A stretch of DNA of 64,000 nt, taken from positions 124,001 to 188,000 of IMG/VR virus record IMGVR_UViG_3300042473_001265; one strand, given 5' to 3'. The notes below the pieces were generated by a model that was not told where the DNA came from, made no database searches, and saw only the letters and a list, made by a program, of their open reading frames with translations. The stretch's first letter is position 1, and every line of letters starts with the position of its first letter. Made by a program: the position numbers and the translations under genes. This document shows, piece by piece, positions 11,794 through 38,200 of the stretch.

Positions 11794-12342
11794 TTAAGAA
11801 AACCGCCAGTAACTTGAAACTCTAATGGTGCCCTCTGGCACTGGATTAAACATGGCATGCCACAGCAGCGGCTGACTGCCGTCAGCAGCCAAGTGATTAA
11901 GCATGATATAGCCCGAATTGGGCCGGCTTAGAAATTGATACAGTAGGTTCTCTGGGTGTTTGTAACGATAAAATCCAGTGCCATATGCCTCGCTGGGCAC
12001 TGTCCAGTACAACTGCATGCTGTTAGGTACATGTCCGTCGGTGTGCATTGCAACATCAAATCCAGGAACATCTATCCAGAAGTGGCCACCCATTGATTTA
12101 AACTCTGTGCCCAGTGCAGTATTAATTTCAGGCAAGCAATGATTGATGTATCTGCTGTAACGCTGAGCAGTGACGTCGTCCCAATTGACTTGCCGACGAG
12201 GCCAAGACTCTTGTCCGCTGCTTAAACTGGTGGACACGGCGGACCAGTCTGTGCTGACTATTTCATCTGCTTGTTCTTGGGGCAGCAAGTCGTCGACTTG
12301 CCAAAGTCTGGCACGATCATCAACTTGTGTAAATTTGGCCAT
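11794..12342 (-). CDS. 2OG-Fe(II) oxygenase-like protein
   Basis: HTD (HxD), distal H (WHAM), RVS (RxS) in DSBH-like spacing. Confidence 0.7.
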   Translation of the reverse strand: MAKFTQVDDRARLWQVDDLLPQEQADEIVSTDWSAVSTSLSSGQESWPRRQVNWDDVTAQRYSRYINHCLPEINTALGTEFKSMGGHFWIDVPGFDVAMHTDGHVPNSMQLYWTVPSEAYGTGFYRYKHPENLLYQFLSRPNSGYIMLNHLAADGSQPLLWHAMFNPVPEGTIRVSSYWRFS

Positions 12343-13856
12343 TATGAATGGACCTTTACTCCGTACAATTGTTCAAATCGATCAGCGTCGGCACGATCAT
12401 TAACAACAGGCTCTCCGCGTATGTTAAGACTGGTGTTCAGCAGCATGGGACAGCCGGTCATTACAAACCACTTTTCCAAGAGTTCTCTAATGCCTGAACC
12501 ATCCGCAGGAACTGTCTGCACTCTACTAGTGCCGTCATGATGCACAATAGCAGGAAAAAGCTCAGGATACCAGCAGTTGGCGACTGCTTGCATATACCTA
12601 CTATGGCTGAAACCCCTAGGCATATCAAAATACTGATCAGCGTATTCTTCAAGGATAACTGGTGCAAATGGTCTGAATTTTTGTCTGCGTTTGATCTCAT
12701 TTACTCGATCCTTTATTTCCGGGCCGCGAGGGTCTGCTAGTAAACTCCTATTGCCTAACGCACGTGGGCCGAACTCGGCGCGTCCCGACGCCACGCCCAC
12801 AATACCATGCTGCAATAGATGATCCAGCAGCTGATTAACAGGATATTTACCACCAATGCTATCGCCCAAATAAGCGTCAGTCCAATCAATGCGACCACCG
12901 TAAGCCAACGCTGCGGCGCCAAGACTGCTGCCACCATCGCCTGGGCAGGGCATGATCCAAATATTGTCAAAATAATTTCCAATCCGTTGGTTGGCACTAC
13001 AGTTAAGGGCAACACCACCCATGTACACTAGATTGTTGCTCCAGTTGAATTGTTTTGCACGAAACATTACATTCAAAATAAGGTCTTCTGCTAGAGCCTG
13101 TGCCCCGGCAGCAATATCAAACTCTGAATAATCATTTAGATATTCAGCTGCCAGACCTGTGTGCAGATTATCTTTGAAACGAATTTCATATTCATTGTCG
13201 ACGAGATCGTAGCGCATTCGATTGCTGATATTGTTTTGTCCATATGCAGCCATGCCCATCAGGATGTATTCTTCGTCCAAGGGTCGTAGACCCACACGAG
13301 CTGTGACTGCGCTGTAAAACAAACCTATGCTGTGCGGATACCCGCGGGACCAAAGTTTTTGATAAGTTGCTCGACCCGAAGAATTGTATTCAGCACCCCA
13401 GATGGTTATAGTATCTAGTTCTCCAACAGCATCTATCACAACCACCGTGGCTCGATCATAGGGGCTGGTCTGGAATCCGGCGGCGGCGTGGGCAATATGG
13501 TGTCCTGTGTAACTGTGTCTAGCATGTAATAAAGCACTGAGATGTGGGCCAGCAGATAGATGTTTACGGAGATACTGCCCAAGAGTAAAAGAATTAAGAT
13601 CCAATGCTTCATGATATTGTCCGGAATAAAGTTGTTGTATTTTTTTGACCCATGGACGTTCGTAATAAGCAACCTGGTCCGGTGTGCCGTGACGCAAGGC
13701 TGCTGCCACTAGTTCATCATTTAGGTGTGCGTCATTCTTGATCTTGCTATAGCGTTCTGCATGTCCAGCAAACAGCACAGATCCGCCGGAGTCAATCATG
13801 CTGACAGCAGCATCGTGGTAACCGGCGCTGATTCCCAAATACTTTTTTAATTTCAT
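12342..13856 (-). CDS. O-carbamoyltransferase (NodU/CmcH/TobZ family)
   Basis: HDAA, ERYSKIKND, HHIAHA, GGVALN, EFGPRALGNRS, FRPFAP, DGTSRVQTV, LNTSLN. Confidence 0.93.
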   Translation of the reverse strand: MKLKKYLGISAGYHDAAVSMIDSGGSVLFAGHAERYSKIKNDAHLNDELVAAALRHGTPDQVAYYERPWVKKIQQLYSGQYHEALDLNSFTLGQYLRKHLSAGPHLSALLHARHSYTGHHIAHAAAGFQTSPYDRATVVVIDAVGELDTITIWGAEYNSSGRATYQKLWSRGYPHSIGLFYSAVTARVGLRPLDEEYILMGMAAYGQNNISNRMRYDLVDNEYEIRFKDNLHTGLAAEYLNDYSEFDIAAGAQALAEDLILNVMFRAKQFNWSNNLVYMGGVALNCSANQRIGNYFDNIWIMPCPGDGGSSLGAAALAYGGRIDWTDAYLGDSIGGKYPVNQLLDHLLQHGIVGVASGRAEFGPRALGNRSLLADPRGPEIKDRVNEIKRRQKFRPFAPVILEEYADQYFDMPRGFSHSRYMQAVANCWYPELFPAIVHHDGTSRVQTVPADGSGIRELLEKWFVMTGCPMLLNTSLNIRGEPVVNDRADADRFEQLYGVKVHS

Positions 13857-13954
13857 TTGTAGATAAACGGATCTCGTTTACGAAGTTCTTTGAGTTTTTT
13901 ACGATAACGTATTTCTAAGCGAATACGGCTAATTAAATTTTTAATCCAGTTCAT
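13853..13954 (-). CDS. 33-aa basic peptide MNWIKNLISRIRLEIRYRKKLKELRKRDPFIYK
   Basis: Fills the intergenic gap exactly, with ATGA overlaps at both ends; not in ORF track. Confidence 0.8.
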   Translation of the reverse strand: MNWIKNLISRIRLEIRYRKKLKELRKRDPFIYK

Positions 13955-15054
13955 GGAGTTTTCCTTGATGAATAGTCATAGCCCGGGCGCATCATATCAA
14001 TTTGTTTTTGCTTGTAATCAGCGTCGGTCCAACAGTAATCAAATGTACTGACGACACCGTCTATTTCTATCTTGTATATATCCAAATGCGAACTCAGTAT
14101 ATCCCAAATAGCCTGATAATCAGTTGTGCCGAAACTTTGCTGTAACTGCACTTGTCCAATGGGCAGGTATCCTAAACTCAATGCTGAATCTTCGGGGTCG
14201 CGTCCATTGGCCTGCAACCACCGTTTAAATTCGTCTTGTTGATTGTTGTGCCACGGTTGATTGCCATTGTATACCACATCGTTGCCCCATTCTATGTCAA
14301 ACTCTCCGCTGTAGTATTTTAATTCTGTAATAGCTTCGCATACTGTTGCAGTAAGTTCCGGAGCATGTTCGTCACGAAACACTTCGAATAGTGTTTTGCC
14401 TATCTGTGCCCAGTGCATATAAACACCGCCCAACACACGGTCGTATCCGTTTGTTACAAAGCCCGATCTATGTGCAGGTTTTAGATTGTAACGAGCTGCT
14501 GCTAAGAATGTAGTAATTTGACTGGGGCGCAGCCAATAAGGCGTAGTGTTTGCTTTGCGCTGACTGAGAATCAGTGACTCCATTTCGTGACAGATATTGT
14601 TCAACTGTCTTATGGCATACTTGGTATCATAGTCGGCCCGTTGATAATAGTTGCTTAAATTGTTTACGGTACCTTGCAGCACTTCAAAGTGGTTGTGAAG
14701 CCTGTTCAACATGTCGTGGTTGACATGTTGTACAATTTTGTCAGGATTTTGTGACCATGGACCTGCTGTTGTAACCGTAGCAGGCGAGTATGTTTCTTTA
14801 ATTTTGTAGTCATCAAAGAAGTTGTTTACTACACTGGCCGCTTGGTTGACTTCGTTGCACAGGTAATCAAGTGTGCGAGCTGTTTTGGAAAATCCCATAA
14901 AACAAAAGTTTTTTTCCAACAGGTTGCCAGACTGTAGCAGTGTTTTGAGAGCAGGTATCCAATCTTGTGCCAATTCATTGTCTGCGGGCAGTATGGTATA
15001 GTCAACCTGATCGCTATGTTTCAACGGATTGCGTAGTACAATTTTAACAGTCAA
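13951..15054 (-). CDS. Hypothetical protein (367 aa) in modification operon
   Basis: ORF track; TTG start overlapping the previous gene; LHNHFE and NNICHEME His/Glu motifs. Confidence 0.75.
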   Translation of the reverse strand: MTVKIVLRNPLKHSDQVDYTILPADNELAQDWIPALKTLLQSGNLLEKNFCFMGFSKTARTLDYLCNEVNQAASVVNNFFDDYKIKETYSPATVTTAGPWSQNPDKIVQHVNHDMLNRLHNHFEVLQGTVNNLSNYYQRADYDTKYAIRQLNNICHEMESLILSQRKANTTPYWLRPSQITTFLAAARYNLKPAHRSGFVTNGYDRVLGGVYMHWAQIGKTLFEVFRDEHAPELTATVCEAITELKYYSGEFDIEWGNDVVYNGNQPWHNNQQDEFKRWLQANGRDPEDSALSLGYLPIGQVQLQQSFGTTDYQAIWDILSSHLDIYKIEIDGVVSTFDYCWTDADYKQKQIDMMRPGYDYSSRKTP

Positions 15055-16336
15055 TTTGATTCCACCATGTTAACACATCAGGTCGGCTGGCCAGTATGTC
15101 GGCCATTGTAAATTTATCTTCACGAATTTGTTCTAGTTTTAACACACGCTGCTTGCCTCGAACAAGTCCTGCTTGCCAGGTGTCGGGCCATTGTTCTTCA
15201 AAGGTTGGGCGGGTTTTTAATTGTACCAGGATTGCTTGCACAGCTCCAGAACAAGAGGCTATCAATTCATCCAGCCACGGGTCAAGCAGGTGCCGCGGCA
15301 GAGCCAATGGGCTCATCACAATGTCAGGAGAAAACGCAAATACCACTTTTGCTAAGATATCGGTGTCTGTTTGTTGTGCAAGTTGCACAATGTTTTCAAT
15401 TTCAAACATTCCTGGCAAGGTGAGAGTAAAGTCGATTCTGACCTGGCGTCTGTGAGTTCTTGCTGCAACTGCTCTATCGTAATTTTTGCGCCAGCCAGCA
15501 TAGTCAAGGCCTGTTCTAATATATTCGCCAATGCGTTGTGTACCATCGAGACTCGCACAGATTTGCCAATCACGAAGGCCATGTAGAATCCCATCAAAGA
15601 GATCAATGCCACGATAATTAATTCTCGAAAGGTTAGTATTATATCTCGCATAGACTTTATGTCCATCTCCAAGTTCAACAATGCGTTTCATATAGCGCCA
15701 ATGTTGTTCGTACATCAAGGGTTCGCCACCAACCCAATACACTTCTTCAACGCGGTGTTCTTCAACTGCCTGCGCAAATTCTGCTTCGATTTGTTGATCT
15801 TGAAACTGAGAGATATCCTTTCTGACAGCAGGTTGCATCCAATTGTTCTTTGAATTGGACCAATCAATCATGTTGTGTTGGCGCTGTTCGCTTTCCCATG
15901 CACTGCTCAACATGTCACCGCATGTACGACATTTGAAATTGCACAGGTTACTGAATCTGTAGTCCCAACTCACTGGCAGCATGCTGGTGCTGCCGTCTGC
16001 ATCAGTGGTTTCCCAAATGCTATCATACTTATGTTTGAACATACTCCAGAAATAGCTGCGGTAAACATCGGTGTTTAGAAGTTTGCTGTTGCATACATCA
16101 CATTCTGGCAGTGTTTCTCCGGCCATCATACGGCGACGCACACTCCGCATGTGTTCACTGTTCCAGTGTTGATCCAGTGTGATGGGAGTATATTTGCCTG
16201 AGCCGGCGGCTGTGTCAATGTACTGTGTGAAACTTTGTGCAGGCTCACGGCTGGCACAGCACATTCTGCGTTCAGTTTGTGGACTCAGGTAGGTGTGAGT
16301 CCACGGCGCCATGCAAAGTGTTTCAGGCTTTGACAT
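15044..16336 (-). CDS. Radical SAM protein with N-terminal twitch (half-SPASM) domain
   Basis: CMAPW..RMCC..CDVC N-terminal; CNFKCRTC; GGEP; YNTN. Confidence 0.9.
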   Translation of the reverse strand: MSKPETLCMAPWTHTYLSPQTERRMCCASREPAQSFTQYIDTAAGSGKYTPITLDQHWNSEHMRSVRRRMMAGETLPECDVCNSKLLNTDVYRSYFWSMFKHKYDSIWETTDADGSTSMLPVSWDYRFSNLCNFKCRTCGDMLSSAWESEQRQHNMIDWSNSKNNWMQPAVRKDISQFQDQQIEAEFAQAVEEHRVEEVYWVGGEPLMYEQHWRYMKRIVELGDGHKVYARYNTNLSRINYRGIDLFDGILHGLRDWQICASLDGTQRIGEYIRTGLDYAGWRKNYDRAVAARTHRRQVRIDFTLTLPGMFEIENIVQLAQQTDTDILAKVVFAFSPDIVMSPLALPRHLLDPWLDELIASCSGAVQAILVQLKTRPTFEEQWPDTWQAGLVRGKQRVLKLEQIREDKFTMADILASRPDVLTWWNQIDC

Positions 16337-17537
16337 AGTCAATCAATGCTGCAAACTCCGGCTCTACATCTGCTAGATTTTGTTGTCGTTTACGGTCAAG
16401 ATCAAGGATATTCATTCGTAGCAATTGTCCATCCAAACTGTTGCCACGATTCATAAATTCTGCGGCACTGACAAATTCTGACAGTATGTTAGCAGGAACA
16501 TCAGCCCGGGTCAATTGTTTTGTAATCGCTGTTTTGGCTGATTCAGGCAGGGTACTGATGCTGAAGTAATAGGCATCATGCATCATGTTCCAGTATATAA
16601 AATCAAACTTTTGCTGTATTAACCATTGGGCCACTGTTTCAAGATAATACACATTGAACACATTGATGGTACAACAGGCCTGCAATGTAATGTTGCTGTT
16701 GCGACTGCGTAGTTGTCTAAAGCGTTCTGTATTTGCAACCACATCGGCCCAGACGGCATTGCTGCGCTGATATTCGAATCGGTGTTCAACATCGTCAATG
16801 CTTAGTGCAATTTCAACATGTTTGAAATGTTTCCAAATTGCTTCGCCTTCTTCGGGGTACTGTGTGCCATTGGTGTTGTAGTGTATTTCAACTTGTGCAG
16901 CGCGACCTGTGTCTACTAATTTTTGTAACAGTTGGAAATGTTCCTTGATCATGAACGGTTCACCACCAGTGAACTCAATGTAACGAATGTTGTCTAGATG
17001 TTGATCTAGATCCGTCCAAAATTCAGCACTTTCTCTTGGCCAGGCACCGTCTTTCAACATCTGATAAGCAAAGCTACTGCGAGTTTCTTCTGCACGATTG
17101 AACCGAATTTCTTCTGCTGCAAACTGGCTGCTGCTCCAAGATCCACATATGCGGCATTTTAGATTGCAAATGTTGCCCAGTTTGAGATCAAGAAACATCA
17201 AGGGCATTGCATCTGCTGTCCACGACACATTGGAATCGAGCAGGTGTTTGAGTCTGTCTAGTGTATGCATGCGCTTGCTGGTACGCCCGGCTCGCTCTTC
17301 ATTCCAGCAGCGGCGACAGTTTTGTGGTTTTTTGCCAGCAAGAAAATCTTCGCGCAGCGTTCGCATTGCTCGGCTATTTTGTATTTCCGTCAAGCTGGTG
17401 TTGGCCAACTTGTATTTGTTGCCGTCGTTGTCTTCAATCTCGTCAATGGCCAAACAACAAGGTCGTACTGTTCCCACTGGACTTGCTTCCAAGCTGATCC
17501 AAGGTAGTACACAAAAAGTATCATGGGGTATGTTCAT
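16323..17537 (-). CDS. Radical SAM protein with N-terminal twitch domain
   Basis: FCVLPW..RPCC..CRRCW; CNLKCRIC; GGEP; YNTNG. Confidence 0.9.
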   Translation of the reverse strand: MNIPHDTFCVLPWISLEASPVGTVRPCCLAIDEIEDNDGNKYKLANTSLTEIQNSRAMRTLREDFLAGKKPQNCRRCWNEERAGRTSKRMHTLDRLKHLLDSNVSWTADAMPLMFLDLKLGNICNLKCRICGSWSSSQFAAEEIRFNRAEETRSSFAYQMLKDGAWPRESAEFWTDLDQHLDNIRYIEFTGGEPFMIKEHFQLLQKLVDTGRAAQVEIHYNTNGTQYPEEGEAIWKHFKHVEIALSIDDVEHRFEYQRSNAVWADVVANTERFRQLRSRNSNITLQACCTINVFNVYYLETVAQWLIQQKFDFIYWNMMHDAYYFSISTLPESAKTAITKQLTRADVPANILSEFVSAAEFMNRGNSLDGQLLRMNILDLDRKRQQNLADVEPEFAALIDYVKA

Positions 17538-18853
17538 TTGATAGGAATCCTGGTATCAGGCCGACGAAATTCTATAATGGATTCAAGTTCTGGTACTACA
17601 CCAAGCAATGATTCACTGCGAGACCAATCCAGATCATTTACTGAATCCCAAAAATCTTTCAACAAGTGTGAATTGTCTGTGGCCATCATAAATGCTATGG
17701 CGCCTTCAAATCCGCCCACAGCTCGTTGTATCTGATCAATAGGACGCAGATATTCAATGTGTTCTTCAAACTGCTGTTTAAATTTTAATTTAAGGTGCAT
17801 CGGCAACATGTCTATACGATAATCCTGCGGCCCTTGTAAAATATTCAGATTGAAGTCTTGTGCTTTGATGAACCCAGAATCGATCATGTAACGGTGGAAT
17901 TTAACAAAGTTCCATATGTTCATCATACTCAGTGTGGGACTGATCATAAAATCTATATGCGGGCACTCGCGTTTTAGATCCCGTATATTTTGTTCTACCT
18001 GGGCCCAATCAGTTCCAGATCGTATAACTTCGGCCCGCTCGGCCATGTCATCCAGGCTGGCGGCCACACACACATTGGGAAAATGTTTCCATAGTTCCAG
18101 CACTGATTCTTTTTTATATCGCAGGTCGTTTAGATTGGTATTGTAAATCAGCCGCACTTCGGTGTTGCCTTTTTCTATCAGCAATTTTAAGATGCGATTG
18201 TGTTCTTCCATGATCAATGGTTCGCCACCGGCAAAATAAATTTGTTCCAAATGCGGAATATGTTCTTGCATTTGCTCCCACACATCCTCCTCGTGCTGGC
18301 CTGCAAATTGCACTCGCGGTCGTAATGGTTTCCCCCACAGCTTAACATCGTCGTCGTACCAGCGACTGCTAAAAATACTGCCACAACTGCGACATTTGAG
18401 CTGACACATGTTGCTAAATCTCACATCCCAATAATGCAACCGCATGTCGGGCAAGCTACCATCTGGCAAAGTTTGATCTATTTCGTCGATGTAATGTCCA
18501 AAATTCTTATTGCTGTTATTTCTCATGCTGGCAAATCCAGCGCCTTCCTGTTCGTAACAGTCGCCACACTGTTTACAAGATTTATCCGCCAACATATTGC
18601 GCCGCATTTCACGCATGGGCTCGTCGTTCCATATTTCCCGCATGGTGTTTTCTTTGAGATTTCCCACTGGATGTTCGGCTTTGCCTAAACAGCAAGGATA
18701 TGCTCGACCGTCCGGCCATGCATGCAGATGTATCCAGGGAATCATGCAAAACACTTCCGACTCAATCAATTTATGCTGCTGATCCTTTGTTATATCTTCT
18801 AGTTTTATGTAGGATGGAATGCGGTCTTTCCAATTGTAGTTGCTAAGACTCAT
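17534..18853 (-). CDS. Radical SAM protein with N-terminal twitch domain
   Basis: FCMIPW..YPCC..CGDCY; CQLKCRSC; GGEP; ATGA-coupled start. Confidence 0.9.
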   Translation of the reverse strand: MSLSNYNWKDRIPSYIKLEDITKDQQHKLIESEVFCMIPWIHLHAWPDGRAYPCCLGKAEHPVGNLKENTMREIWNDEPMREMRRNMLADKSCKQCGDCYEQEGAGFASMRNNSNKNFGHYIDEIDQTLPDGSLPDMRLHYWDVRFSNMCQLKCRSCGSIFSSRWYDDDVKLWGKPLRPRVQFAGQHEEDVWEQMQEHIPHLEQIYFAGGEPLIMEEHNRILKLLIEKGNTEVRLIYNTNLNDLRYKKESVLELWKHFPNVCVAASLDDMAERAEVIRSGTDWAQVEQNIRDLKRECPHIDFMISPTLSMMNIWNFVKFHRYMIDSGFIKAQDFNLNILQGPQDYRIDMLPMHLKLKFKQQFEEHIEYLRPIDQIQRAVGGFEGAIAFMMATDNSHLLKDFWDSVNDLDWSRSESLLGVVPELESIIEFRRPDTRIPIK

Positions 18854-20187
18854 AATGATTGATACCATTCTTTTAGGTTAGGAAATGTGTTGCTAAAGTT
18901 TTTGTTCCTGCGCACATCATATTGATCAAAGAACTGGCGAAAGTCGTTGTGTAACTTGGGCATGTCAAATGTGTCGCTGTGTGGAGTTTTAACAATTTTC
19001 AAATAGTCAATCAATCTGCGAACATGATTCAGTTCAAATTCTTGACATGCTGATCTATTGTCAACTGATTCTTCCCACATGATCAAACAATTGCGAGCAG
19101 AGGACAACAAGGCAGGTGATAATACCAACGGAGATTGAAAACTTGGAAAGCGTAATATATTTAGTGTAAAATTAACTCGTTGTGTTCCGTAGGCTTTTTT
19201 TAATTTTATCAACTGTGTTAGGAATTCGGGCAATGTTTCTAAACACAATGCATTGATTGTACACATCACATGCACAGCACGAATATGATCGTGCTCCAAC
19301 AATTCTTGAACATTGTGCATCCATAGATCATAGTCCAAGCCGTCTCTTATGTATTCAGCAGCCGAGCCTGTTGCTTCGCAACTGGTGTATATCTCTAGGT
19401 GTGGGATATCTTGAACTCGTTCAATGAACTCCTGTAGCTTGATGCGATCCATGCCCAGATTTGAATTGATTGCTAGACGAGTTTGACTGCGACCTTGATT
19501 TGTTTTGAACCAGTCAATCAGCTTCCAGGTCTCACCGCTCATCAAGGGTTCGCCGCCGGTGATTCTCAGCTCTTGTAGTGTTCGGTGGAGGTCTGATTCC
19601 CACCAAGCAAAGAACGCTTCAACATATGGATTCGTCTCACCAAAGCGGTATAGTTGACTGCTATCGTGAGTGTGAGTAAAGTGGTTGCGCCCATCAGACA
19701 CCAAATTGGCATAGCCGCCGTGCTTTCGAATGTCATTGACCCATGTGCTACTGAAAGCAGGGTTACAATAGCTACAAGCAAATTGGCAAGTGCGGTCGAA
19801 CGCAATTTCAAGTGTGCGAAGATTGACGTCTTCATTGTACGGAGTTTGGTAAGCTTCATCAAGTGCCTTTATAGGGTAAATTTTACTTTTGTATACACGG
19901 TCGCTGACAGCATCAGTGGCCATGTCTTCGATCTTCCAGCAGTATTCACAACCGGCAGGGCGATCACCTGCCAGCATCTTCTTGCGATCATCTTTTTTCT
20001 TTGCTGTGTTATGCAGTGCAGCCGGATTGGTTTTTAGTTCTTCGAGATCAACAGCATGTGCTGGTGGATGATGACAACTGGTTGTTTGCCCGGAACCCAA
20101 CCATATAGTGGCATTGTACCATTTGGCTGCACAGAAACTAGCACTTTTGGTATCCAAGACCTGGTGCTTGAAATCTAGATCATTCAT
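18850..20187 (-). CDS. Radical SAM protein with N-terminal twitch-like domain (SCHH subtype)
   Basis: FCAAKW..SCHH..CEYCW; CQFACSYC; GGEP. Confidence 0.9.
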   Translation of the reverse strand: MNDLDFKHQVLDTKSASFCAAKWYNATIWLGSGQTTSCHHPPAHAVDLEELKTNPAALHNTAKKKDDRKKMLAGDRPAGCEYCWKIEDMATDAVSDRVYKSKIYPIKALDEAYQTPYNEDVNLRTLEIAFDRTCQFACSYCNPAFSSTWVNDIRKHGGYANLVSDGRNHFTHTHDSSQLYRFGETNPYVEAFFAWWESDLHRTLQELRITGGEPLMSGETWKLIDWFKTNQGRSQTRLAINSNLGMDRIKLQEFIERVQDIPHLEIYTSCEATGSAAEYIRDGLDYDLWMHNVQELLEHDHIRAVHVMCTINALCLETLPEFLTQLIKLKKAYGTQRVNFTLNILRFPSFQSPLVLSPALLSSARNCLIMWEESVDNRSACQEFELNHVRRLIDYLKIVKTPHSDTFDMPKLHNDFRQFFDQYDVRRNKNFSNTFPNLKEWYQSL

Positions 20188-21286
20188 TGAAATGTTTGTT
20201 TATAAATTGTTTAAAGCGGGCCGGAAATTCAGATCGAACTCGAGTTCGCATTTCCGCAAGATGTTGCTGGTTGTATTTACATACATTATAGCATTCTTTT
20301 AAGAAACTTGCAAGGTCTTGTTGACATAAATCTTTAACCACACGACTCACTTGCACCATTCTATCTTGATTGTTTGCTATTTCATCAAACCTCTCGTCAA
20401 TCACATGTCCGAATGTTTGAAATCCTAGATTATGCATATCTCTATAATATCCCTGATTGGCAACCGCAATCCATGGATGTCCAATTGCAATGGGTTTCCA
20501 TATTTTCTCTGTTCTAAAACTGTAGCGATAGTTTTGAACAGTTTCGGTCACCAAGCTAAAATAAGTATTGGTATACTGTGCCGGAACTAGATACACGTCT
20601 CCCCATATGTCAGACTCGAACAAATATTTTTTTACATTTTCATCAGTCTGAGATATGTCAACATTGAACCGATCAAGTTCGTATTGCCGATCGAGCAATT
20701 TCACCGGGCCATTGGCAGGATCTAAATTGCTCCATAATGCTGTATCAAGTACGTCGGCTAACTGTTCAATCATAAATTTTCTATGCTGTCTTCCTTTTCC
20801 GTTCAAAAATAAAAATTTATATGGTCGATTGGTTGAATAGGTGCGTTTATAAGTTTTTATAGCGTTGATATTTTCATCGTAGTCTAGTATTTTAGGAAGA
20901 AAATTTTCATATACAAGATGCAGATATTGTGCCGGAACATCGCCGCCGGTTAATAATAGTATTTTTCCTTTTTTGAGTAACTCAAGTAGATCAGTATTTT
21001 CATTTCCATTGGCCAGTTTAGTACGAAATTCTGGCCGGCCGCAACGATTTATTAAAGTTGCCGATCCTTCACTTGGTTCAGCATATATAGCTTTTATAGT
21101 ATTAGTTTTTACCAACTCTACAATTTTTTCAAAATTTTCTCCAAACTCAGCGTGACTTATCAAATATATAGCATTGGGAACCAAAGTGTGTTCTTGAAAA
21201 ATAGAAAATTTATCGTCGGCATACACAGCAAGTTCATCGTGTATTCCACATCCTGTGTCTATTATTAATTTACGATTGCCGAGCAT
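20180..21286 (-). CDS. Putative glycosyltransferase (GT10-like TEK motif)
   Basis: LVTETV..RTEKIWKPI..HPWI..GFQTF..DERFD; visibly more AT-rich than neighbours. Confidence 0.5.
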   Translation of the reverse strand: MLGNRKLIIDTGCGIHDELAVYADDKFSIFQEHTLVPNAIYLISHAEFGENFEKIVELVKTNTIKAIYAEPSEGSATLINRCGRPEFRTKLANGNENTDLLELLKKGKILLLTGGDVPAQYLHLVYENFLPKILDYDENINAIKTYKRTYSTNRPYKFLFLNGKGRQHRKFMIEQLADVLDTALWSNLDPANGPVKLLDRQYELDRFNVDISQTDENVKKYLFESDIWGDVYLVPAQYTNTYFSLVTETVQNYRYSFRTEKIWKPIAIGHPWIAVANQGYYRDMHNLGFQTFGHVIDERFDEIANNQDRMVQVSRVVKDLCQQDLASFLKECYNVCKYNQQHLAEMRTRVRSEFPARFKQFINKHFNE

Positions 21287-22694
21287 GGTACTCACATTCC
21301 TTCCACCAGGCACTCATTTCTGGAAACACGCTCAAGAAGTCTGTACCGTGTCTGTGATCTGCTTCTGTAAAGAACCGATAGAAGTCAGCTTTATTTCGTT
21401 GCAGGTACGCAGAGTCTAATCGTTGTCCATCACGCATCCAGGCTATGTCGCGATCAAGACGAGATATTTCATAATCTTTGAAACCGTGCAATCTGGTTGC
21501 TTCTGTTTCGATACCGTGTTGCATTGATATTTTTAATTTTTCCAACTGTGCTGCATAGCTTTCTGGCAACAATTGTAAACTTTGCCAAGCGGGTTGTCGC
21601 AGCACTGGAGTATCAAACCACACACGCTGATATGTGCTGCTGTGTTTTTTTCTAAGTTCTATAATGCCATCTAACAGCTCGGGTAAACTTGTCACACTTA
21701 GGTTATTCATTGTCACAATAAATGTCACACTGTTGCGCGAAGGAACTTCGGTTAAGAACTGATTTACTCTGCTCCACACCAAATCAAAATTCATGCCATG
21801 GCGCATGTACTCGGCCTGACGGCCCCATCCGTCTAGACTGATGTATTGCATAAAGTGCTCAACCACTCCTTCTTGGCACAATTGTTTGGTGTAGGCCAAA
21901 TAGCGTTGCCAACTTTTTTCATCCACACTGAAGTTGCTGGTTACATTGAGATGCAGATTAGATTTGGGATTGGCCAGCACATAGTCAAACACACGATAGG
22001 TATTCCGATCCAGCAATGGTTCGCCGCCGGTCATTCTGAAGTGCTCCAACTCGGGATACAAGGTGGGCCACCACTGCCAAAACGCTTCCACATAGGGATT
22101 GTGCTCACGAACAGGAATGGATTTACGGTCACCTGCAAAGTGCTCAGGCGCATTGTGCGGGATGGATGTAGGATAAGCACCGTGCCGATCAGTTTCTTGT
22201 TGCCAGGTGCTGCTGAACTGTGGGCTACAATAGCTGCAAGCAAGGTTACAAGCGTTGTTGAAATTTACTTCAACATAACTGGGAGTAATGTCAGCGTCCC
22301 ACTCTGCATTCACAATGGTGCCAAAGTCTTTGGCAGCCCACGGTTCTCCTGATCTGTAATGTCGGTCACTGAGTTTGCCATTGTCTTCCATTGTCCAACA
22401 GTAGCTGCATTCAGCAGGACGTGTGCCCTCTAGCATTTGTTTACGCTGTTGTTTTTTATAATCAGTGTTGTGTAATGCAGCAGGATTGCGACCAATGGCA
22501 TCTACAGGAATACGATGCAAGGGCGGGTGGTAACAACTGTTGTTAAGGCCAGTGGTCAGGTGTAGACTGACTTGTTTCCATTTGGCCAGACACATGCTGG
22601 GACTAACAGTATCTAACTGTTGTTTGATTAGTTCGGCATCACTTAAAAACTTTGATTTAAAGTCTTCGTTGACTTCGTCACCTTTGTTTTGCAT
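21270..22694 (-). CDS. Radical SAM protein with N-terminal twitch-like domain (SCYH subtype)
   Basis: MCLAKW..SCYH..CSYCW; CNLACSYC; GGEP. Confidence 0.9.
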   Translation of the reverse strand: MQNKGDEVNEDFKSKFLSDAELIKQQLDTVSPSMCLAKWKQVSLHLTTGLNNSCYHPPLHRIPVDAIGRNPAALHNTDYKKQQRKQMLEGTRPAECSYCWTMEDNGKLSDRHYRSGEPWAAKDFGTIVNAEWDADITPSYVEVNFNNACNLACSYCSPQFSSTWQQETDRHGAYPTSIPHNAPEHFAGDRKSIPVREHNPYVEAFWQWWPTLYPELEHFRMTGGEPLLDRNTYRVFDYVLANPKSNLHLNVTSNFSVDEKSWQRYLAYTKQLCQEGVVEHFMQYISLDGWGRQAEYMRHGMNFDLVWSRVNQFLTEVPSRNSVTFIVTMNNLSVTSLPELLDGIIELRKKHSSTYQRVWFDTPVLRQPAWQSLQLLPESYAAQLEKLKISMQHGIETEATRLHGFKDYEISRLDRDIAWMRDGQRLDSAYLQRNKADFYRFFTEADHRHGTDFLSVFPEMSAWWKECEYHARQS

Positions 22695-29278: not shown

Positions 29279-32200
29279 TTATTCGCCCCGTAAAAACCTT
29301 GCAGCCACAGTATTGGTATCTTGCAGTGCTACGCCGTTGCTTGGGGTTCCTGCACCAGGTGCATACCATGTTACTCCGCGCCGTACCAATATTGTAACTT
29401 CTGAACCGGCTGCTGGTGCTGTATCAAACAACACAGTGACAGGGTTTTCATTGGTAACTGTATATCCGCCCAATTGCAATGTTCCGCCTATATAAACTTC
29501 AATTGCTTCGTTATATACAGTACTGTCTTCGCTGGACACATCTATCAGTGCAGCCACAAATGATGTGGTAACTCCGTCACCAATGTTTACTCCTGATATC
29601 AGTGGGTTAGTTATATTAGAAACAATATAATTCTGATATTCTGGTTGTAACAAATTGCCGCGGCCAATGTTATAAACATCTGCGTTGACTGCATGACTAG
29701 CAGCGCCAGTTCCGGCTGTTCCGCGACGCAATCCACTGACGGTATTGGTAACCAGATTGCGATTGCGGTACATGATTCGTTCACCGTTGACAGTCAACAG
29801 ACCCCAGATATTATTGGCTAAATTTGGTTCATCTAGTGCGGCTGCATTGTAAACATAAATTGTGTCGGCATCAGCACTCAACGCTTGTGTCAAATATGTT
29901 GTAGTTGCTGTGGTAATGCGGTAGGTAGCTTGCACACCGCGCATGTCTTGGAATATACGGAATGCCATTGCCAATGGAGCAATGCTGTTGGTAAACTGCG
30001 TGATCATCACTACATCAGTTGGTGACAATATATATCCGCCGGCCAACACAATTTCATCATTTACAAGTGTATAGCTAACATTGTTGAACAGCAAAACGCC
30101 ATTTAGAGTAACAAATAAACGATCAGGGTCTGTGTTCAAATGATCCAAGAACAAGTTGTTCAATGACACTTGCTGCGGCGGACTGTAATCAAACGACCCT
30201 GGCGCACCAACTACTGTTCCAACGTCAAAATCTGTACTGTCAAACGGTTCAGTGCCATCTGGAGTAACTCTTGCGCCAGGACCAACATATACCTGTGTCA
30301 GTATATCCTGTTGGCGAGTATCATTCCAGCTTGTTACAGCAATAATTTGGCCATCTGTAGGAACAAAGCCGCCGTATTGATTAAACAATATTTGATCGCC
30401 TGTGACCACAGCCTGTGCATCAGTGGTCACACAAATTAAAATTTTCTCTCCGTCGGTTGGAGTGACGTCAAAAATCACTGCTCTTGGAGTATCAGGATCA
30501 TATGGCTCGACAATAAAATCTATATTGAGAATTTGAGGAATATCGTCAACATAAACACGAACTTCGTTGTCAGCAATTATGCTCTGGTCAAAGCCTAGAC
30601 GTTGAGGCAACAGATATTCACTAGTGCCATCAGCATAGTATTGTGCGCCGGCTGCTGTTCTCACTCTGCGTCCGTCAATGGTGACATACACATTGTCTGG
30701 ATTGGTGTACTCCATGCTGTTGGTCAGCGTGTACAGATATTGGTTAGATATGCCTGCAATGTATTGAGTAACCGGAACAGACCAACTGTAATTTATTTCA
30801 GTGTCGTCAATGGTAGTTGGACCAATGGCCGCAATCATCAAGTAGTCAGCGGATGTATACAAGTTGGAAAACAGTAATTTAGTACTTGTTCCTGCTTGTA
30901 TATAGGTGTAGTTGGTAATCAGACTGCCATTGACAAATATAACAAACTCGTCAATCAATGAATACTGAACTGGAACAACCAATGAGCTTCCGATTGGTTC
31001 TGGTGTAACTTCGTCTCCATTGTAAGGACGTTTGAGTAGTTGATTGCCACCACCTATTTCAAACAATGAAATTACTATGACATCGTCTACATCAACACCA
31101 TTGATCACAGTGACAGTCTGGGCAACCCAATCAACTGTGTAATCTGTTACAGGATGCATCAACAATCCGGTAGTTTGATTTTCCACAAGCAATGTAGCAG
31201 GAACTGGATCTACACTAGCAAAATCAAATGTCTCTGGCACTGCTGTCACAGTGTATTTTTTAACTTCAATACGGAAGCCGTGGCCGTCACGGGCCCAATC
31301 AGCACCGGGAGTTGTGTACACTCTTAGATCCAGTGTGTCAAACTCGCTGCCTGGAACCAATTCTTCTGGAGCATGACTTGAATATGTGTCAATATAGGCA
31401 CCGCCGTCGGCGTTGATACTGGTGGCCAATGTTCCCAAATAAGGATCGTTATATGGACTTTGGTAGATGGCATCCAATATGGTCTGATCGTATGTGGGAC
31501 GACCTTCTGGGCCGTATGTCAAGTTATCAAATGGCGTTGTATCAAATGGTGCTATATCAAATCCCGGATATTGATCATATCCTACCCCAAACATTTGCAC
31601 TCCGGGATATTCAACACCGTCGATCAACAATGGCAAACTCAACCCAGGCTCGTTCACTGTGGGAGTATAAAAACCCATTGTACGGTCAACGCCGCTCAAC
31701 AGTCCAGGATTGACAATGACCCAATCTGCAGGGTCAAATGTATTGCTCTGAATGCCTGTGCTGTCGTCGGCTGCGGCTTCCCAGACACGGTTCAAATAAC
31801 GAACCTGTGTGCCATTGTCGTAGTTTACGCCGGCCTGCCATTCAACAATGGTAGATGAGTATTCATATCTGTCGTATTTGATTCTGGTGGTAATTTGACG
31901 AATCAAATCATTGCCCATTGTCACTGCTGCTGCGGCACCAGTTCCGTTGCCGCCAACAAAAGTTATAATAGCAGTGGTTGTGTAACCACTGCCATAGTTG
32001 TCAATGGTTATGCCGGACACTTGTCCTGCACCATTGATAATGGCAGTCATTTCAGCTTGTTCAACACAATCGCCGGTCACTGTGATCGACGGTGCCACTG
32101 TATACCCAACTCCGCCATTGGTAATCACAACTGCCTGTATGCTCAGTGTGTAATTTGCGTACCATTCGTCCCACGGGGTTTTAGCCCACAGTGTAGAATC

Positions 32201-35200
32201 AGCCGCTGTATCAGCATTGAAGTTGGTATTGCTGTTGGCAGTTGACTGAGTATACGGCAACAATACTGGACTGATAAATTGCGGTACAGTCAGAGTTGCA
32301 TCCCAAAATGCCGGCAAGTCAAAGTCGGTCATCAGTCCAGGATAAGCATCGTTGCCATTGTAAGACAGGTTAAACTCTCGAATTTGTGTATGATAAGGTT
32401 TAACTTCTTGTATGTAATTCAACACAAAGTCTTGATTGTCTCGATTGTAAAATTGATACGGTAATAAATTACGAATCTTATGATCAACATCAATTAGACT
32501 GGTTTTTATCAACCAGTCTGGTGAAGCAAATTCGCTCATCACATATTCAAATGTCAATATCAATGCACGATTGCGCTCAATCAACAACTCGTCAATGAAT
32601 AGTTGTTCATTGATTGCTTGGATAATTTTACGAGTTTCGATAACAGGTTCTTGATCAAAATACTGACTATCAAAAACTTCTACATCAAACCCAAAGTTGC
32701 CAGCAGCATAGTCCCACAATGATCGACTGAATTCAATTGTGCCATCTTCTAACCCCACACGATCCCATCCAAGATCAGTGCGTTGGTAAATTTCAAATTT
32801 TCCAGTGGTAGCAGCATTGGTCACTTCAACACTGGCACCAACTGGTGCAATTTTCAATGTCACCCCGGACAATCCAGAATAGTTCAACACCGAAGTTACT
32901 GGATTTACTGTTTTATTATAGCCTGGCAGATACCAATCAATATAAGACCAATATCTTCGTGTGTCATAGTTTTGAACACGAATCAATGTCAGCTCTCTGG
33001 ATCCTGGTGCAGAGCCAGACACAACTTCGTATATGGTCCAAAAACCACTGTTGTTGGTGTCAGTGGCCACTAGATATCGGTATCCAAGGGGTACAATAAT
33101 TAGATTTTGATAACCTAATTCTGAAAGGTTGGCAACTCTTTTGTTCCATGCACCAGAATTGGCTGCTGGTTCCGGCTCTCTGCTGTTGAGCAAGGTAAAA
33201 CTTTTTGTTTCAGTGATAGGATACTGTGCCAACACTGTGTTGGCGCGGCCTAGGTAGTTTTGCAGTGCCCCAAAACGGTCGGCAAACATGCTCTGTCGAG
33301 GGCGGAATTCCACACCGTACCGCATGGCCGGACTTAGTCCAGGATCTGGCACACTGGCGCCGGTAATGTTGATACCAGAGAAACTGTCTTGCAGTTTCAA
33401 ATACAAGTTACCACTTAAGAAACTGTCAGCACGATCCGCTGCAATTAATTCATATTCCTGGTGAACATTGTCATCATTGGCCAAGCGATCATATTCAACA
33501 TGCAGGATTGTGTCTTGAGCACTTATTAGGTCAAGCACATTGTAAATTGCCACTGTGCTTGCATTTAACGGAGCAAGATATGCAATGCCGCTGGCACGAG
33601 GAAACTGGATATAGTTGGCAATGGCAGTTGTGCTGAGTTTTTTTCCTGCCACAGTGTTGACTGTGGAAATATTTCTCACCCAGAAATAATAACGAGTAGC
33701 AAAAACATTTTCAGAATTTAATTCTGCACGAGTAGTATAGCTCAGGAAACTCAATGGAGTTCCGGGGCCTGTGTAATTGGCTGGTTGCACTTCGCTTTCG
33801 ACCCACTGATAGATATCAATACGGCTGCCTGGGAATGTTTGTCCCCAGCGGCGGCTTGCATAAACAATGTCGTCTTGATTGGGGTCTATGAAACGGACCG
33901 AGTTGGTATCCCACCAAATTTGGCCAACTCTTGCGCCAGCCCAGGGATTGCCAACATTGCGAATTGGCCCATTGTTGTAGTTTGCTGGATCCACCGCTCC
34001 AACATAATCAATATTTTCTTGGGCAATACCCAAGATCTTACCTTGCAATGGATCAAAGAAATCCAAGTAACTGGTCACTTGGGACTCTAACTTGTCGTAC
34101 ATGTAAACAGAATTTAGTAGAGCAACATCCACCACTGGTGTTTGTAGATGTTTCACTGTCCAGGCTGGCGTTCTGTCAGGGTTATCAAACACAACAACTT
34201 GACCAAAGTTGGCAAACTGGCTGTCTTCTAAGTCATTGCCGGGTGCGCCCACCAACAGCTTGCCTGTGATGTAGCTGAGCCCAGTTCCGTATCCGTCAAG
34301 TTCTTTGGTTGCATCATTGTATAATTGTTGACCAAACACAAACTTACCGGGATTGTTGACTGAGTCTGTGGAACTTGGCAAATAATCAAAAGTATATGCC
34401 ACGCCACTCTGTACAATTGTGGTTGAAAATACAGTACTGCGATCATCAAAATAAGTTGTGTTGTTGTCAAACGTCACTGGTTTATACATGTTGCCGTTTG
34501 GAGCACCCACCACCAATGTCAACGCAGTTGAGTCAATGAACAGGCTGGATCCAAAACGAGCAAACTGACTTGGATTTGGACTGGTAATTGTTTGTGTGTA
34601 AGGATAATTTACAAAACCAATGTCTGTAAACGCTGATCCAGTTAAGCCCGGCAGCACATTTAGTTTTGCGTTGGATGTTGCTGCGGCCGCATTTATGACA
34701 CTTAGAGTCAGTACACCCGTCACCACACGAATTACAGTTTTATCAGCTGGTGCAGTAATAAAGGCAATAGTACCTTTGGTATTGTTATAGGTGTAATCAA
34801 CATTTAATGTTTGTAATGTTGTGCCCAGGTACACTACTGTGTTATAGCTGTCAAATTGAGAATATGTTACACCAATGTCAAATGTTTTTACAATGCCATC
34901 AGCAACAAAATACAAATCATCACTTACTGTGGCTGTGGCATTTGGTATGCCAATGCCGTTGTTGGCGCTGTTGATGGCCGCAGCAAGGCCTGCCACGGTG
35001 TTGTTGGGAGCGGCAGGCACAGCAACTTGATAGTCATTGACACGCACGGTGTTGCCTGCTGTCAGCACAGGATTTGCAACTGGTGAAGAGATTATACCGT
35101 ACACACGAGCTTGGTTCACATTGCGCTGCACAGCGCCAGAGTCATTGTTGGTATTCTGTGGCGCTCCTATGTAGATGCTACAGTTGTTTGGACACAGGTC

Positions 35201-38200
35201 CACATCCCACCCAAATTGTGCTTGATAAATTGGTGCATTGTCTGCTGTTTGATTTAGAGAATCCCAATCAGATGTGATGACAATTTGTTGTACTGTGTTG
35301 AATATGTTGCTTTCAATTTCAATTATGTCGCCCACTGCCAGTGTCACTGCGCTGGTCAACACAACGTCATTGCCGACCACATTGAATCCACCATCAACTG
35401 CAAACTCTGCATTGGTCAAGAACACATTGTTGATCAACACGCTGACCGGCGCTTGCCATCCAGCAGGCAATGCAAATGTGGTTGTGGCTGTTTCGCCTAT
35501 GCCAACTTGATATCGTAATACGCTGCGATCATACACATATGTGCTGCCGGACTCCAGGGAAGAAACCAAACTTGTTGGCGCTCCTATCACTACCTGACGT
35601 CCATCTGTGGCTGACGCCACACTGTGACCAAAATTTACACTGTTGGCAGGGCCGTCAATTTTGTCAATATATTTAAAATATGTTCTAGCAGACGCAAAGA
35701 TAATTGCATCTGCAGGTGGTATGGCAGCAGGTTCAAATGTGACTGTTGTTCCGGCAAATGTATAATCAATGTATGGGCGCTGTGCAAATCCGTTTACTTC
35801 TAACAGGAACGAATCAATATCAGTTGCTGTGTACAAATATTCAGACAGGTCAAACGAGTCGTCGTTGTCGATGCCGGAACCCACAGGTGTAAATGTAACA
35901 ATGCCGCCAACTGTGACTGTGTTGACTGTGATCACCAAGTCATTTGCAGGTGATGTACCACCTCCAATGGTAGCAGCATTAATAGTAAGTGTATCACCAA
36001 TTGCATAGTCCAGGCCCGGAGCAGTTAACGATACTGCATAGTCTCCGCGAGTACGGTCTACAGTAAATGTTGCTTGTGATCCTGATCCTGATGTGGAATC
36101 TTGTGTTACTCCGTAGTAAACTTGATTGTCAAGTTGTATAGACTGGCGTCGAGCAATCACAATCACTGAACCGGCATCAGGTGTAGCTGCAAATAGCACA
36201 GCGGTATTGCTTAAAACATAGTCAACGCCTTCTGATTGTGCGGTGTTGTTAACAACCACTACCAATTGATTGGGATTTGTATAATCAATTTTGACAGCAC
36301 CGGAATATTGGTATTGTTGGTTTATTCCGTCAGCAATGTATGTCACCGACTGTGCAGCAACATCAACTCGACCATAGGCATACACTGCATTTTCGTCCGG
36401 AGCTCCGATGTACACAATTCGTTCATCTTTGCTTATGGCAACACTGGTGCCAAAACTTCCTGCACTGGTATCGTAGTCGGGTGCCACCAACAATTGTGGC
36501 TGTGTAAATCTACTGTCGGATGGATTTCTATTGATAATTGAAGCATACCCAACACCGCTGGCACTAAGGCTTGCGCCTGCTACTGCCCATGTTTGATTAC
36601 CAAATGCAATGTCATTACCAAATCCCAGTGTTTCGGGTGCTGTCAAGTATAATAAATTATCGTCAACATATAGCGCATCTGCTCCTCGTACATACGGATA
36701 TATCACACCGGTAACAGTAGCAGTTGCGTCATTGTAGAATGTAGGTGCGCCTACCAGGGCAGCAAGATTATCATAGGCTTGTGCAACACTTGTGCCATAC
36801 GCAGTATTTTCTATTGGCAAATGCTGCACTAAAGTATGGTTGTCAGTGAACACATCTTGTTTTTCCAGCACTTCCCATAGTTGGGCGCCGTTGTTGTCGA
36901 CCCAGGCCAGTGCACCAGGTACTAGATCATTGGCATAAGATAACAATCCCACGTCACTGGCCTGGGCCACACGCATTGTATCAAGATAAAATGCCAGGCC
37001 GTTGCCGGTGGCAACAATTTGGTTGCCTGTGAATGCATAAGCAACTGTCAAAGTAGTTGGCGTTGGTGCTGTCAACACACGATATACACCGTTGAACGAT
37101 TCATTAAAGAATCGAACAATTAATATATCTCCACGAGTTAAATCGTGTACTGCGGTGAATGTAACTAAACTTGTTCCGTTGAGATTGTCACTTACTCGAG
37201 TAATTCTTCCTGGGGTCTGAGTGGCACGGTACACATTCCAATCATAACTGTTTGTTTTGGCTACCCAAATTCTTGTGCCGTTTCCAATGTTGTCAAGGTC
37301 TGCTGCAATTGAACTTGGATCATCCAAAGAAAACACTGTGATATCAACGTCGTTGATGTTGACATAACCTGCTGTTGGCAATGCTGTGTCTGTAACAGTT
37401 GTGGTTGTTGTAGGTAAAATGTCAGTTGACGGCAACTTATAACTTTCACGCCATACATTATTCAACAACACAGTTTGATTTGCTACACTTGATTCGCCCA
37501 CTTCAATTATTTGTACTGTTGCAGGATCACTTTGCAACAATGCTTCATTCAATTGCAATTCAAAGAAACTGCGGTTGGCATTGGCACCATAGGTGCCGCG
37601 CAGCACTGCCCAATTTTCATAGATTTGATAATCAGCAACTTCTTTGCCAAGATTTGCACCAGTAAATATTTCAGCACTCAGCACAGTACCTTTGGTACCA
37701 ATGAACTGCTTGTACAGATTGACTTGACTGGTATCGTCAAGATTCAATGCAACCATATATTCGCGAGGTTGGAATCCGATCAGTCCATAACTTAATAAAT
37801 CGTTGTCACGCTCCAAGTTGGCTGTTTGTGTGTTGTAACTGTTGGCCAGCTGGTCTGCTTTGTTGGCCAAGTTGGGCAACAGACCTTTTTGTATTTTGGT
37901 ATAGTCGCTCTTGACCCAGTCAGCATAGGCAAATTCTCTTTTGGGCTGAACAATTATCTGTGCAGACCAATAGGTATTTTTATAATTGACAATTTCGCCT
38001 TTGGCATATCGGCGATTTGGAACCCAATCTTGCACATTGTCTTGGTTCAACACAAACCCTTGTGCATTCAATGTGCCGTCCCACTCGGTAGTGGTCATTG
38101 CTATTACATTCACGCGGTTTTGTCTAGCAGAAGTAGTTGGGTTATAAATTAAATCAGCAAAAATACTGACATTGTCTAAAATTACAAGATTTTCATAACT

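Follow-up and report, generated by a model that had tools for sequence, protein, structure and literature searches.

A 33-codon jumbo-phage gene beside a carbamoyltransferase gene encodes a putative stand-alone form of the DUF6071 enzyme tail

The stretch of DNA analyzed here (64,000 nucleotides, hereafter the window) covers positions 124001–188000 of IMG/VR record IMGVR_UViG_3300042473_001265, a 340,172-bp viral record rated 98% complete whose source is a jumbo phage from lake water. The subject of this study is a 33-codon open reading frame (ORF) on its minus strand, which lies between a conserved 367-residue ORF and the gene for an O-carbamoyltransferase (CT) of 504 residues (Table 1). A preliminary description of the sequence had pointed to this ORF as an unlisted peptide linked to both neighbors by ATGA overlaps, and its coordinates, translation, and overlaps were all confirmed. 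The peptide ATG (13954–13952) shares an ATGA with the TGA stop (13953–13951) of the upstream 367-residue ORF, and the peptide TGA stop (13855–13853) shares a second ATGA with the start codon of the CT gene (13856–13854). The four tandem radical S-adenosylmethionine (SAM) genes and the peptide gene form one co-directional, operon-like run in the window. The CT was matched to the solved structures of NovN, GdmN, and TobZ at E 4e-51 to 5e-39. The peptide itself is composed of a variable N-terminal part, a conserved basic stretch at residues 17–27, and an invariant C-terminal DPFIYK, and the whole phage genome contains one copy of it.

Table 1. Features of the peptide locus and of its homologue in a cultured phage. 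Positions refer to the window unless an accession is given.
Feature	Position	Strand	Evidence or remark
Peptide gene, 33 codons	13853..13954	-	Sequence, conservation, dN/dS, homology to SGNH-enzyme tails
AAGGA Shine-Dalgarno-like motif	13962..13966	-	7 nt 5' of peptide ATG, inside 3' end of upstream gene
504-residue O-carbamoyltransferase (CT), NodU/CmcH/TobZ type	12342..13856	-	Carbam_trans_N 8.7e-34, Carbam_trans_C 2.1e-46
367-residue conserved ORF directly upstream of peptide	13951..15054	-	No Pfam/NCBIfam family
Four tandem radical SAM genes, N-terminal twitch domain	15044-16342, 16323-17537, 17534-18868, 18850-20187	-	NF033640, E 6e-83 to 7e-120
182-residue ORF downstream of CT	11794..12342	-	No recognized family; found only in closest relatives (L002, L043)
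RsoM2USA peptide homologue, unannotated	MG752970.1 125894-126001 (L133:6026-6136)	-	Gap between RsoM2USA_201 and _200

The length of the ORF was uninformative, with 263 ORFs of at least 25 residues overlapping an 18-kb stretch; since a small ORF alone is thus weak evidence, the reality of the gene rests on conservation. An IMG/VR scan with the CT gave more than 598 viral stretches, from which 80 loci were fetched and compared. A small ORF on the same strand, ending in ...RKRDPFIYK, was present upstream of the CT gene in 78 of these 80 loci, with a Shine-Dalgarno-like motif 5' of its ATG in 65 of the 78. In most loci the peptide stop codon overlapped or abutted the start of whichever gene came next, and it was TGA in 61 of 75 nucleotide versions, mostly as part of ATGA. 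Across these 75 distinct versions D-P-F-I-Y-K was invariant and all synonymous codons were used, including four codons for Pro, three for Ile, and all six for one conserved Leu. The ratio of nonsynonymous to synonymous substitution rates (dN/dS, NG86 method) was 0.10 for the whole peptide, 0.30 for residues 2–16, and 0.03 for codons 17–33; for the last six codons it was 0 at a dS of about 1.2, where synonymous sites are saturated. The coupled gene proposed in the preliminary description, together with its conservation and synteny in relatives, was therefore borne out by its retention in 78 of 80 viral loci and by a dN/dS of 0.10. This conservation and selection also indicate that the split between the peptide and the upstream gene is not an assembly error. 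A frameshift fusion with the 367-residue gene was considered and rejected, as no slippery heptamer was seen by inspection before the overlap.

The peptide also proved to be widespread in protein collections. A HMMER scan of 1.84 billion representative proteins yielded 101 clusters at E ≤ 1e-3, nearly all of 33–60 residues; the identical peptide sequence occurred on 47 contigs, and its 90% cluster comprised 202 members, all named "hypothetical protein." Metagenome gene callers do call the ORF, which had been unlisted merely through its shortness. Two metagenomic proteins, P0003 (75 residues) and P0002 (59 residues), carry two tandem peptide modules, each ending in ...DPFIYK or a degenerate version of it. 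Two lake RNA runs held contigs of relatives with the deepest coverage over the peptide ORF, a signal that may stem from carried-over DNA and that, even as genuine transcription, would leave translation unproven. Neither Pfam nor NCBIfam gave a match to the peptide, even at E ≤ 10, and tblastn against 50,697 cultured-phage records gave no match at E ≤ 0.01. Solved structures searched with a profile of the family gave matches at chance level only, and a feature search of protein clusters returned only unnamed clusters from the peptide's own family. The family is thus undescribed: no Pfam or NCBIfam model covers it, and databases label its members hypothetical. Judged from its sequence, the peptide gene is real, translated, and under strong purifying selection as a protein.

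Comparison of the loci showed that the CT gene is the constant neighbor and partner gene of the peptide. The peptide gene directly abutted the CT gene, with no adjacent SGNH gene, in 44 of the 80 viral loci, and one or two SGNH-type genes (DUF6071-like or GDSL_2-like) stood between the two in 33; the remaining loci comprised one with a short gap and two without the peptide. The 367-residue ORF and an adjacent radical SAM gene preceded the peptide in about 55 of the 80 loci. About 20 viral loci kept the peptide and the CT with neither the 367-residue ORF nor a radical SAM gene within 4 kb, and the same was found in the bacterial loci L085, L086, L089, and L097, of which L089 had a reversed gene order with the peptide after the CT. 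Neighbors in bacteria included glycosyltransferases, DegT aminotransferases, epimerases, methyltransferases, 2-oxoglutarate (2OG) oxygenases, and radical SAM enzymes, contexts that fit sugar-decorating enzymes.

Among cultured phages the nearest was Ralstonia phage RsoM2USA (343.8 kb), which carried a divergent 36-codon copy ending in ...RKQDPFIYK just before the CT RsoM2USA_199. The genes that border this copy, RsoM2USA_201 and _200, are both DUF6071-like, and all genes of the region are annotated as hypothetical. The copy could be located only via the CT and was the sole one of its kind among the 50,697 cultured-phage records. On a 2.58-Mb gammaproteobacterial contig (L093), the order was glycosyltransferase-like gene, DUF6071 gene, peptide, and CT; in L093:1-9446 a phage-type integrase and part of a DDE transposase flank these genes, an arrangement suggestive of a mobile island. 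Two further contigs, from a Haliscomenobacter metagenome-assembled genome (MAG) (L082, 183 kb) and a Polynucleobacter MAG (L083), showed the phage gene order of radical SAM, 367-residue ORF, peptide, and CT, with CT identity of 59–72%; these contigs may have come from jumbo phages and been binned with bacteria, or they may hint at hosts.

The same module was found at the C-termini of larger enzymes. GDSL_2-like proteins of 345–389 residues encoded directly upstream of a CT gene ended in ...RRVRAMKRKDPFIY (...KRKDPFIY) in three organisms of different phyla (a Terrimicrobiaceae MAG, an Actinomycetota MAG, and Geodermatophilus), and Streptomyces DUF6071 proteins encoded directly downstream of a CT gene ended in ...RRSDRSDPYIYP. 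When DUF6071 homologues were gathered via the SGNH catalytic domain alone (n = 33), all 33 carried a variable basic linker followed by [D][P/R]F/Y-I/L/V-Y with at most one residue after it. Profile comparison by hhalign with the last ~34 residues of the enzymes aligned the peptide family with the GDSL_2-like tails over 27 columns (probability 96.4%, P 1.3e-9, score 38.4) and with the DUF6071 tails over 20 columns (probability 89.6%, P 1.9e-6, score 24.7); the best scores among 100 column shuffles were 15.3 and 12.5, respectively. In both cases the motif occupied the extreme C-terminus, as ...FIYK or ...FIY in the peptide and as ...FIYP, ...FLYP, or ...FIY in the enzyme tails.

The tailed enzymes shared the genomic association of the peptide. 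A CT gene was located within 0–1 genes in all 11 DUF6071 loci examined (the Streptomyces loci and six more, the CTs of the latter being 490–502 residues long) and within one or two genes in 3/3 GDSL_2-like loci. A sample of 400 further Actinomycetota genomes contained no DUF6071 gene. The actinobacterial pair of CT and DUF6071 genes (L099, L135, L136, L138, L139, and two JGI contigs) was surrounded by a recurrent gene set that varied by locus and included Y_phosphatase3, 2OG-Fe oxygenase, class I methyltransferase, DegT aminotransferase, GFO_IDH_MocA, and GrpB genes, as well as an EPSP-synthase-like gene, radical SAM genes, and sometimes AMP-binding/PP-binding genes. The set resembles a biosynthetic cluster, as yet undescribed, whose product would be a carbamoylated, amino-sugar-like compound.

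In the AlphaFold2 model of one DUF6071 protein, the predicted local distance difference test score (pLDDT) exceeded 90 in the SGNH core and was below 50 in tail residues 262–290, so that the tail is predicted to be a free, disordered extension that is not packed on its own enzyme. The phage module shares with the DUF6071 (PF19547) and GDSL_2-like enzymes a basic stretch followed by a C-terminal D-P-F/Y-I/L-Y and a nearby short CT of the NodU/TobZ type (about 480–500 residues in bacteria), but it differs from them in being its own 33-codon gene, which usually lies upstream of an SGNH-like gene and not at its 3' end. Because the peptide was a separate ORF in all 78 viral loci (stop-to-stop frames of 33–89 residues), as it was in L093, it is a stand-alone variant and not a member of the SGNH enzyme family; and since the phage SGNH-like genes beside it had no such C-terminal tail, its homology to the tails identifies it as a free-standing tail module. 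We also considered the 367-residue ORF and the peptide as the two parts of a split bacterial tailed enzyme and rejected this, as the 367-residue ORF had no similarity to the tailed enzymes. That the peptide is a real protein and a stand-alone tail of the DUF6071 type is a conclusion that we hold with considerably more assurance than any statement about its function.

A second family of small proteins called for comparison. The preliminary description had stated that SxtK/DUF5989 proteins, encoded beside SxtI-type CTs, end in a PFIY motif, and this was correct: 20 of 20 DUF5989 proteins from Bacteroidota genomes consisted of a short helix, RKK, a membrane helix, and ...APFIY[TA][LI]F, and 17 of their 20 genes adjoined a CT homologue (within 1.5 kb). 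The sxt cluster contains sxtI (CT), sxtJ, sxtK, and sxtL (GDSL lipase); joint action of SxtI with SxtJ and SxtK was put forward by the authors who described it, so that an assisting role of DUF5989/SxtK in carbamoyl transfer is only a proposal there (PMC2679770). DUF6071 has no described function, and neither DUF6071 nor DUF5989 was mentioned by name in the literature searched. The peptide resembles DUF5989/SxtK (PF19451) in its small size, its CT neighbor, and a PFIY near the C-terminus, and possibly in a short N-terminal helix with a basic cluster behind it; in contrast to the peptide, DUF5989 ends in ..TLF, and a membrane helix of ~20 residues separates its basic cluster from PFIY. The peptide, with 12 K/R, 3 D/E, and no hydrophobic run, lacks the membrane helix found in 20/20 DUF5989 proteins.

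The comparison with the DUF5989 hidden Markov model suggested in the preliminary description did not establish a relationship. The model gave no match to the peptide at E ≤ 10 (cut-off 27 bits; true members 70–94 bits), nothing at E ≤ 10 in a six-frame search of the whole 340-kb phage genome, and nothing in five bacterial genomes with related CTs. No SxtJ-type gene was recognized among the Pfam results for the neighboring genes, for which no SxtJ model was run. By hhalign, only the PFIY end was aligned (P 4.5e-4, probability 33%) and the global alignment failed, whereas removal of the membrane segment, a post hoc step, gave 25 collinear columns (P 2.3e-4, probability 44%). As far as sequence can tell, the peptide is not a detectable DUF5989 member, and common descent is possible. 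It would then be a true DUF5989/SxtK homologue that had lost its membrane helix and serves as a soluble accessory of an SxtI-type CT, an account that is compatible with the explanation preferred below, since it differs only in claiming common descent. The shared size, CT linkage, and PFIY end argue for it, as do the apparent N-terminal helix with RKK cluster in both, the 25 collinear columns, and the parallel between the GDSL enzyme of the sxt cluster and the SGNH genes of the phage loci. However, besides the silence of the model and the failed global alignment, the likeness of the N-terminal parts (hhalign score 10.0) was reached by 17.5% of column shuffles, the DUF5989-linked CTs were 31–36% identical and belonged to a longer subfamily, and the expected topology places the DUF5989 C-terminus outside the cell. 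We therefore regard descent from DUF5989 as unlikely. The functional parallel with the sxt cluster is striking: there, too, a CT and an SGNH enzyme occur together with a small protein that bears PFIY.

Taken with these comparisons, the genomic contexts suggest how the peptide may act. The preliminary description had offered two roles, the first being a partner or membrane-tethering subunit of the CT. The genomic side of that proposal stood, as the CT is the neighbor kept everywhere; the physical partnership is something that we infer. The peptide is probably an accessory or docking subunit of the CT, and to the more specific reading that the stand-alone tail module works with the CT, docking via its invariant C-terminus, we assign a probability of roughly 0.5 on the basis of synteny, the fusions to enzymes, and the disordered tail in the AlphaFold model. 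The proposed module would comprise ~27 residues, a basic helix-prone stretch ending in the invariant D-P-F-I-Y. Its extreme C-terminus may serve as a short linear motif for docking onto the CT with which it is co-inherited. A docking motif is suggested by an invariant end that is borne on a disordered or helical basic segment, occurs free or on different SGNH scaffolds, always accompanies one enzyme family, and is not packed on its carrier; the CT is suggested as the target by being the co-inherited candidate. The start–stop overlap would ensure that the peptide is made together with the next enzyme.

The basic N-terminal part probably provides a second contact, which may be with an anionic surface such as a membrane or a substrate polymer, or with an SGNH partner. 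The peptide has a net charge of +9. Of the amphipathic Arg/Lys-rich helix described earlier, residues 1–11 were indeed amphipathic (hydrophobic moment 0.69), whereas an 18-residue window did not rise above shuffled sequences. The net charges of the CTs ranged from -10 to +14, that is, the CTs are not acidic. This led us to reject a bulk electrostatic match between the +9 peptide and the CT. The candidate contacts left for the basic part are a membrane or polymer of anionic character and an SGNH enzyme acting in trans.

The phage CT has both Pfam halves and matches TobZ, GdmN, and NovN but is shorter (504 residues vs their 576–702), and the solved entries of these enzymes list no partner peptide. 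MbtH-like proteins of non-ribosomal peptide synthetases offer an analogy only: they too are small accessories encoded beside a biosynthetic enzyme that they are proposed to bind. MbtH-like proteins are folded domains of about 70 residues, whereas the peptide has 33 residues, is probably disordered or helical, and bears no relation to them in sequence or fold. Co-folding of the CT with the peptide scored 0.15 (mark 0.32), which gives no verdict and is evidence neither way.

Several observations, to which the non-acidic character of the CTs belongs, weigh against docking of the peptide to the CT. Six CT loci of the same subfamily (L033, L053, L092, L096, L098, and L102) had no peptide within 4 kb. 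TobZ, GdmN, and NovN were deposited as single enzymes, so that in general the CT fold can do without a partner. The phage genome carries SGNH-like genes elsewhere (at least three further SGNH/DUF6071-like genes outside the window, at about 41.1 kb, 92.7–93.9 kb, and 316.3 kb of the genome; tblastn E 4e-10 to 6e-7), and an SGNH enzyme may be the true partner. Finally, if the hydrophobic stretch of DUF5989 spans the membrane, its PFIY end would lie across the membrane from a cytoplasmic CT, which weakens the notion of PFIY as a CT-docking element in general. We treat as tentative, and on balance doubtful, the broader idea that the PFIY tail is a general recruitment code for NodU/CmcH-type CTs, presented by membrane-anchored DUF5989/SxtK, by the tail of DUF6071/GDSL-type SGNH enzymes, and by the free phage microprotein.

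A different account dispenses with a specific CT contact and makes the peptide a membrane- or polyanion-targeting element, a cationic amphipathic tag, free or fused, that would tether glycan-modifying enzymes at the inner membrane or on an anionic polymer. Its charge and its amphipathic residues 1–11, which we take to resemble the membrane-targeting helix of FtsA, would suit such a role, as would the glycosyltransferases and sugar-modifying enzymes among the bacterial neighbors, the true membrane helix that DUF5989 has at the same place, and the non-acidic CTs. Yet selection acted most strongly elsewhere: the invariant part is the C-terminal D-P-F-I-Y, and the amphipathic part varies freely (dN/dS 0.30 vs 0.03). 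The corresponding part of DUF6071 tails is a linker rich in arginine whose length varies, invariance of a terminal motif is a mark of specific recognition by proteins and not of lipid binding, and amphipathicity over 18 residues was at the level of shuffles. Targeting of this kind thus has low odds, comparable to those of DUF5989 descent.

The second role offered in the preliminary description, a substrate of the upstream radical SAM enzymes resembling ribosomally synthesized and post-translationally modified peptides (RiPPs), was disfavored by the data. Here the radical SAM enzymes and the CT would modify the C-terminal residues of the peptide, which would be a RiPP-like or PqqA/MftA-like precursor or scaffold. 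Small peptides with Tyr at the C-terminus are the source of known peptide-derived cofactors, and the conserved Tyr and Lys at the end of the peptide, as well as the location of its gene in the same run and direction as at least four radical SAM genes of the window, agree with such a role. However, in about 20 of the 78 viral loci and in the four bacterial loci named above, no radical SAM gene lay within 4 kb. Those of the window are members of NF033640 (279–401 bits) and scored 15–27 bits with peptide-maturase models, far below their cut-offs; Pfam and NCBIfam scans found no RiPP recognition element (RRE) or PqqD-type recognition domain in the cluster; and intact SGNH enzymes carry this module as their tail, which is unexpected for a precursor. 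We consider a precursor role highly improbable.

In known arrest peptides, about the last 17 codons are the length that matters. A cis-acting leader, in which the last 17 residues would act in the ribosome exit tunnel to arrest or couple translation and so control the overlapping downstream gene, would account for the very basic sequence, for conservation concentrated in the last 17 codons, and for a stop codon (mostly in ATGA) that overlaps or abuts the next start whichever gene follows, but it is equally improbable given that full-length enzymes of Actinomycetota end in the same motif and are followed by one gene or another (CT, DegT aminotransferase, methyltransferase, Asp/Arg hydroxylase, or 2OG-Fe oxygenase), that the peptide comes after the CT in L089, and that no conserved RNA element or sensor logic was evident.

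Other features of the window were recorded alongside the peptide. The AlphaFold2 model of the 367-residue ORF was confident (pLDDT 87, predicted TM-score 0.85); a Foldseek search with it found no solved fold, its relatives in the AlphaFold DB being uncharacterized, and in VIA-align cyclophilin-like barrels, among them the Pictet-Spenglerases McbB and KslB, reached only a Z of about 8. The radical SAM region as a whole (15044–22694, minus strand) holds four to five tandem NF033640 paralogues, the fifth being weaker, and a further SPASM/radical SAM gene (57552–59135, plus strand) lies 35 kb from the tandem run; this many NF033640 paralogues is unusual in a phage. The window also encodes sugar-modifying enzymes (an epimerase/dehydratase, a DegT aminotransferase, and an FkbM methyltransferase), ThyX, and an S11 peptidase. 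A 4815-residue ORF with FG-GAP repeats (29279–43726, minus strand) and a baseplate spike-like protein (49474–50988, minus strand; weak matches to Phage_base_V/DUF2345) lie nearby, indicating that the CT/radical SAM cluster adjoins the tail and baseplate module.

The peptide is best filed as a new stand-alone variant among the little-known small or tail-borne PFIY elements that accompany CTs. One motif and one constant neighbor connect the phage microprotein family, the DUF6071 tail, and DUF5989, all of which are uncharacterized. To our knowledge, the small CT-adjacent proteins of the SxtK/DUF5989 type have been listed as "unknown" ever since the saxitoxin cluster was described. The hypothesis offered here is that a peptide of ~30 residues binds or activates the CT. 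If true, it would account for a gene pair that recurs in clusters for natural products and glycans and provide a handle for in vitro reconstitution of such enzymes, and jumbo phages, whose genes of this length regularly escape notice, would gain a functional microprotein. Should the PFIY recruitment code also hold, these CTs would be obligate complexes with an overlooked small subunit, of which jumbo phages would carry the minimal form.

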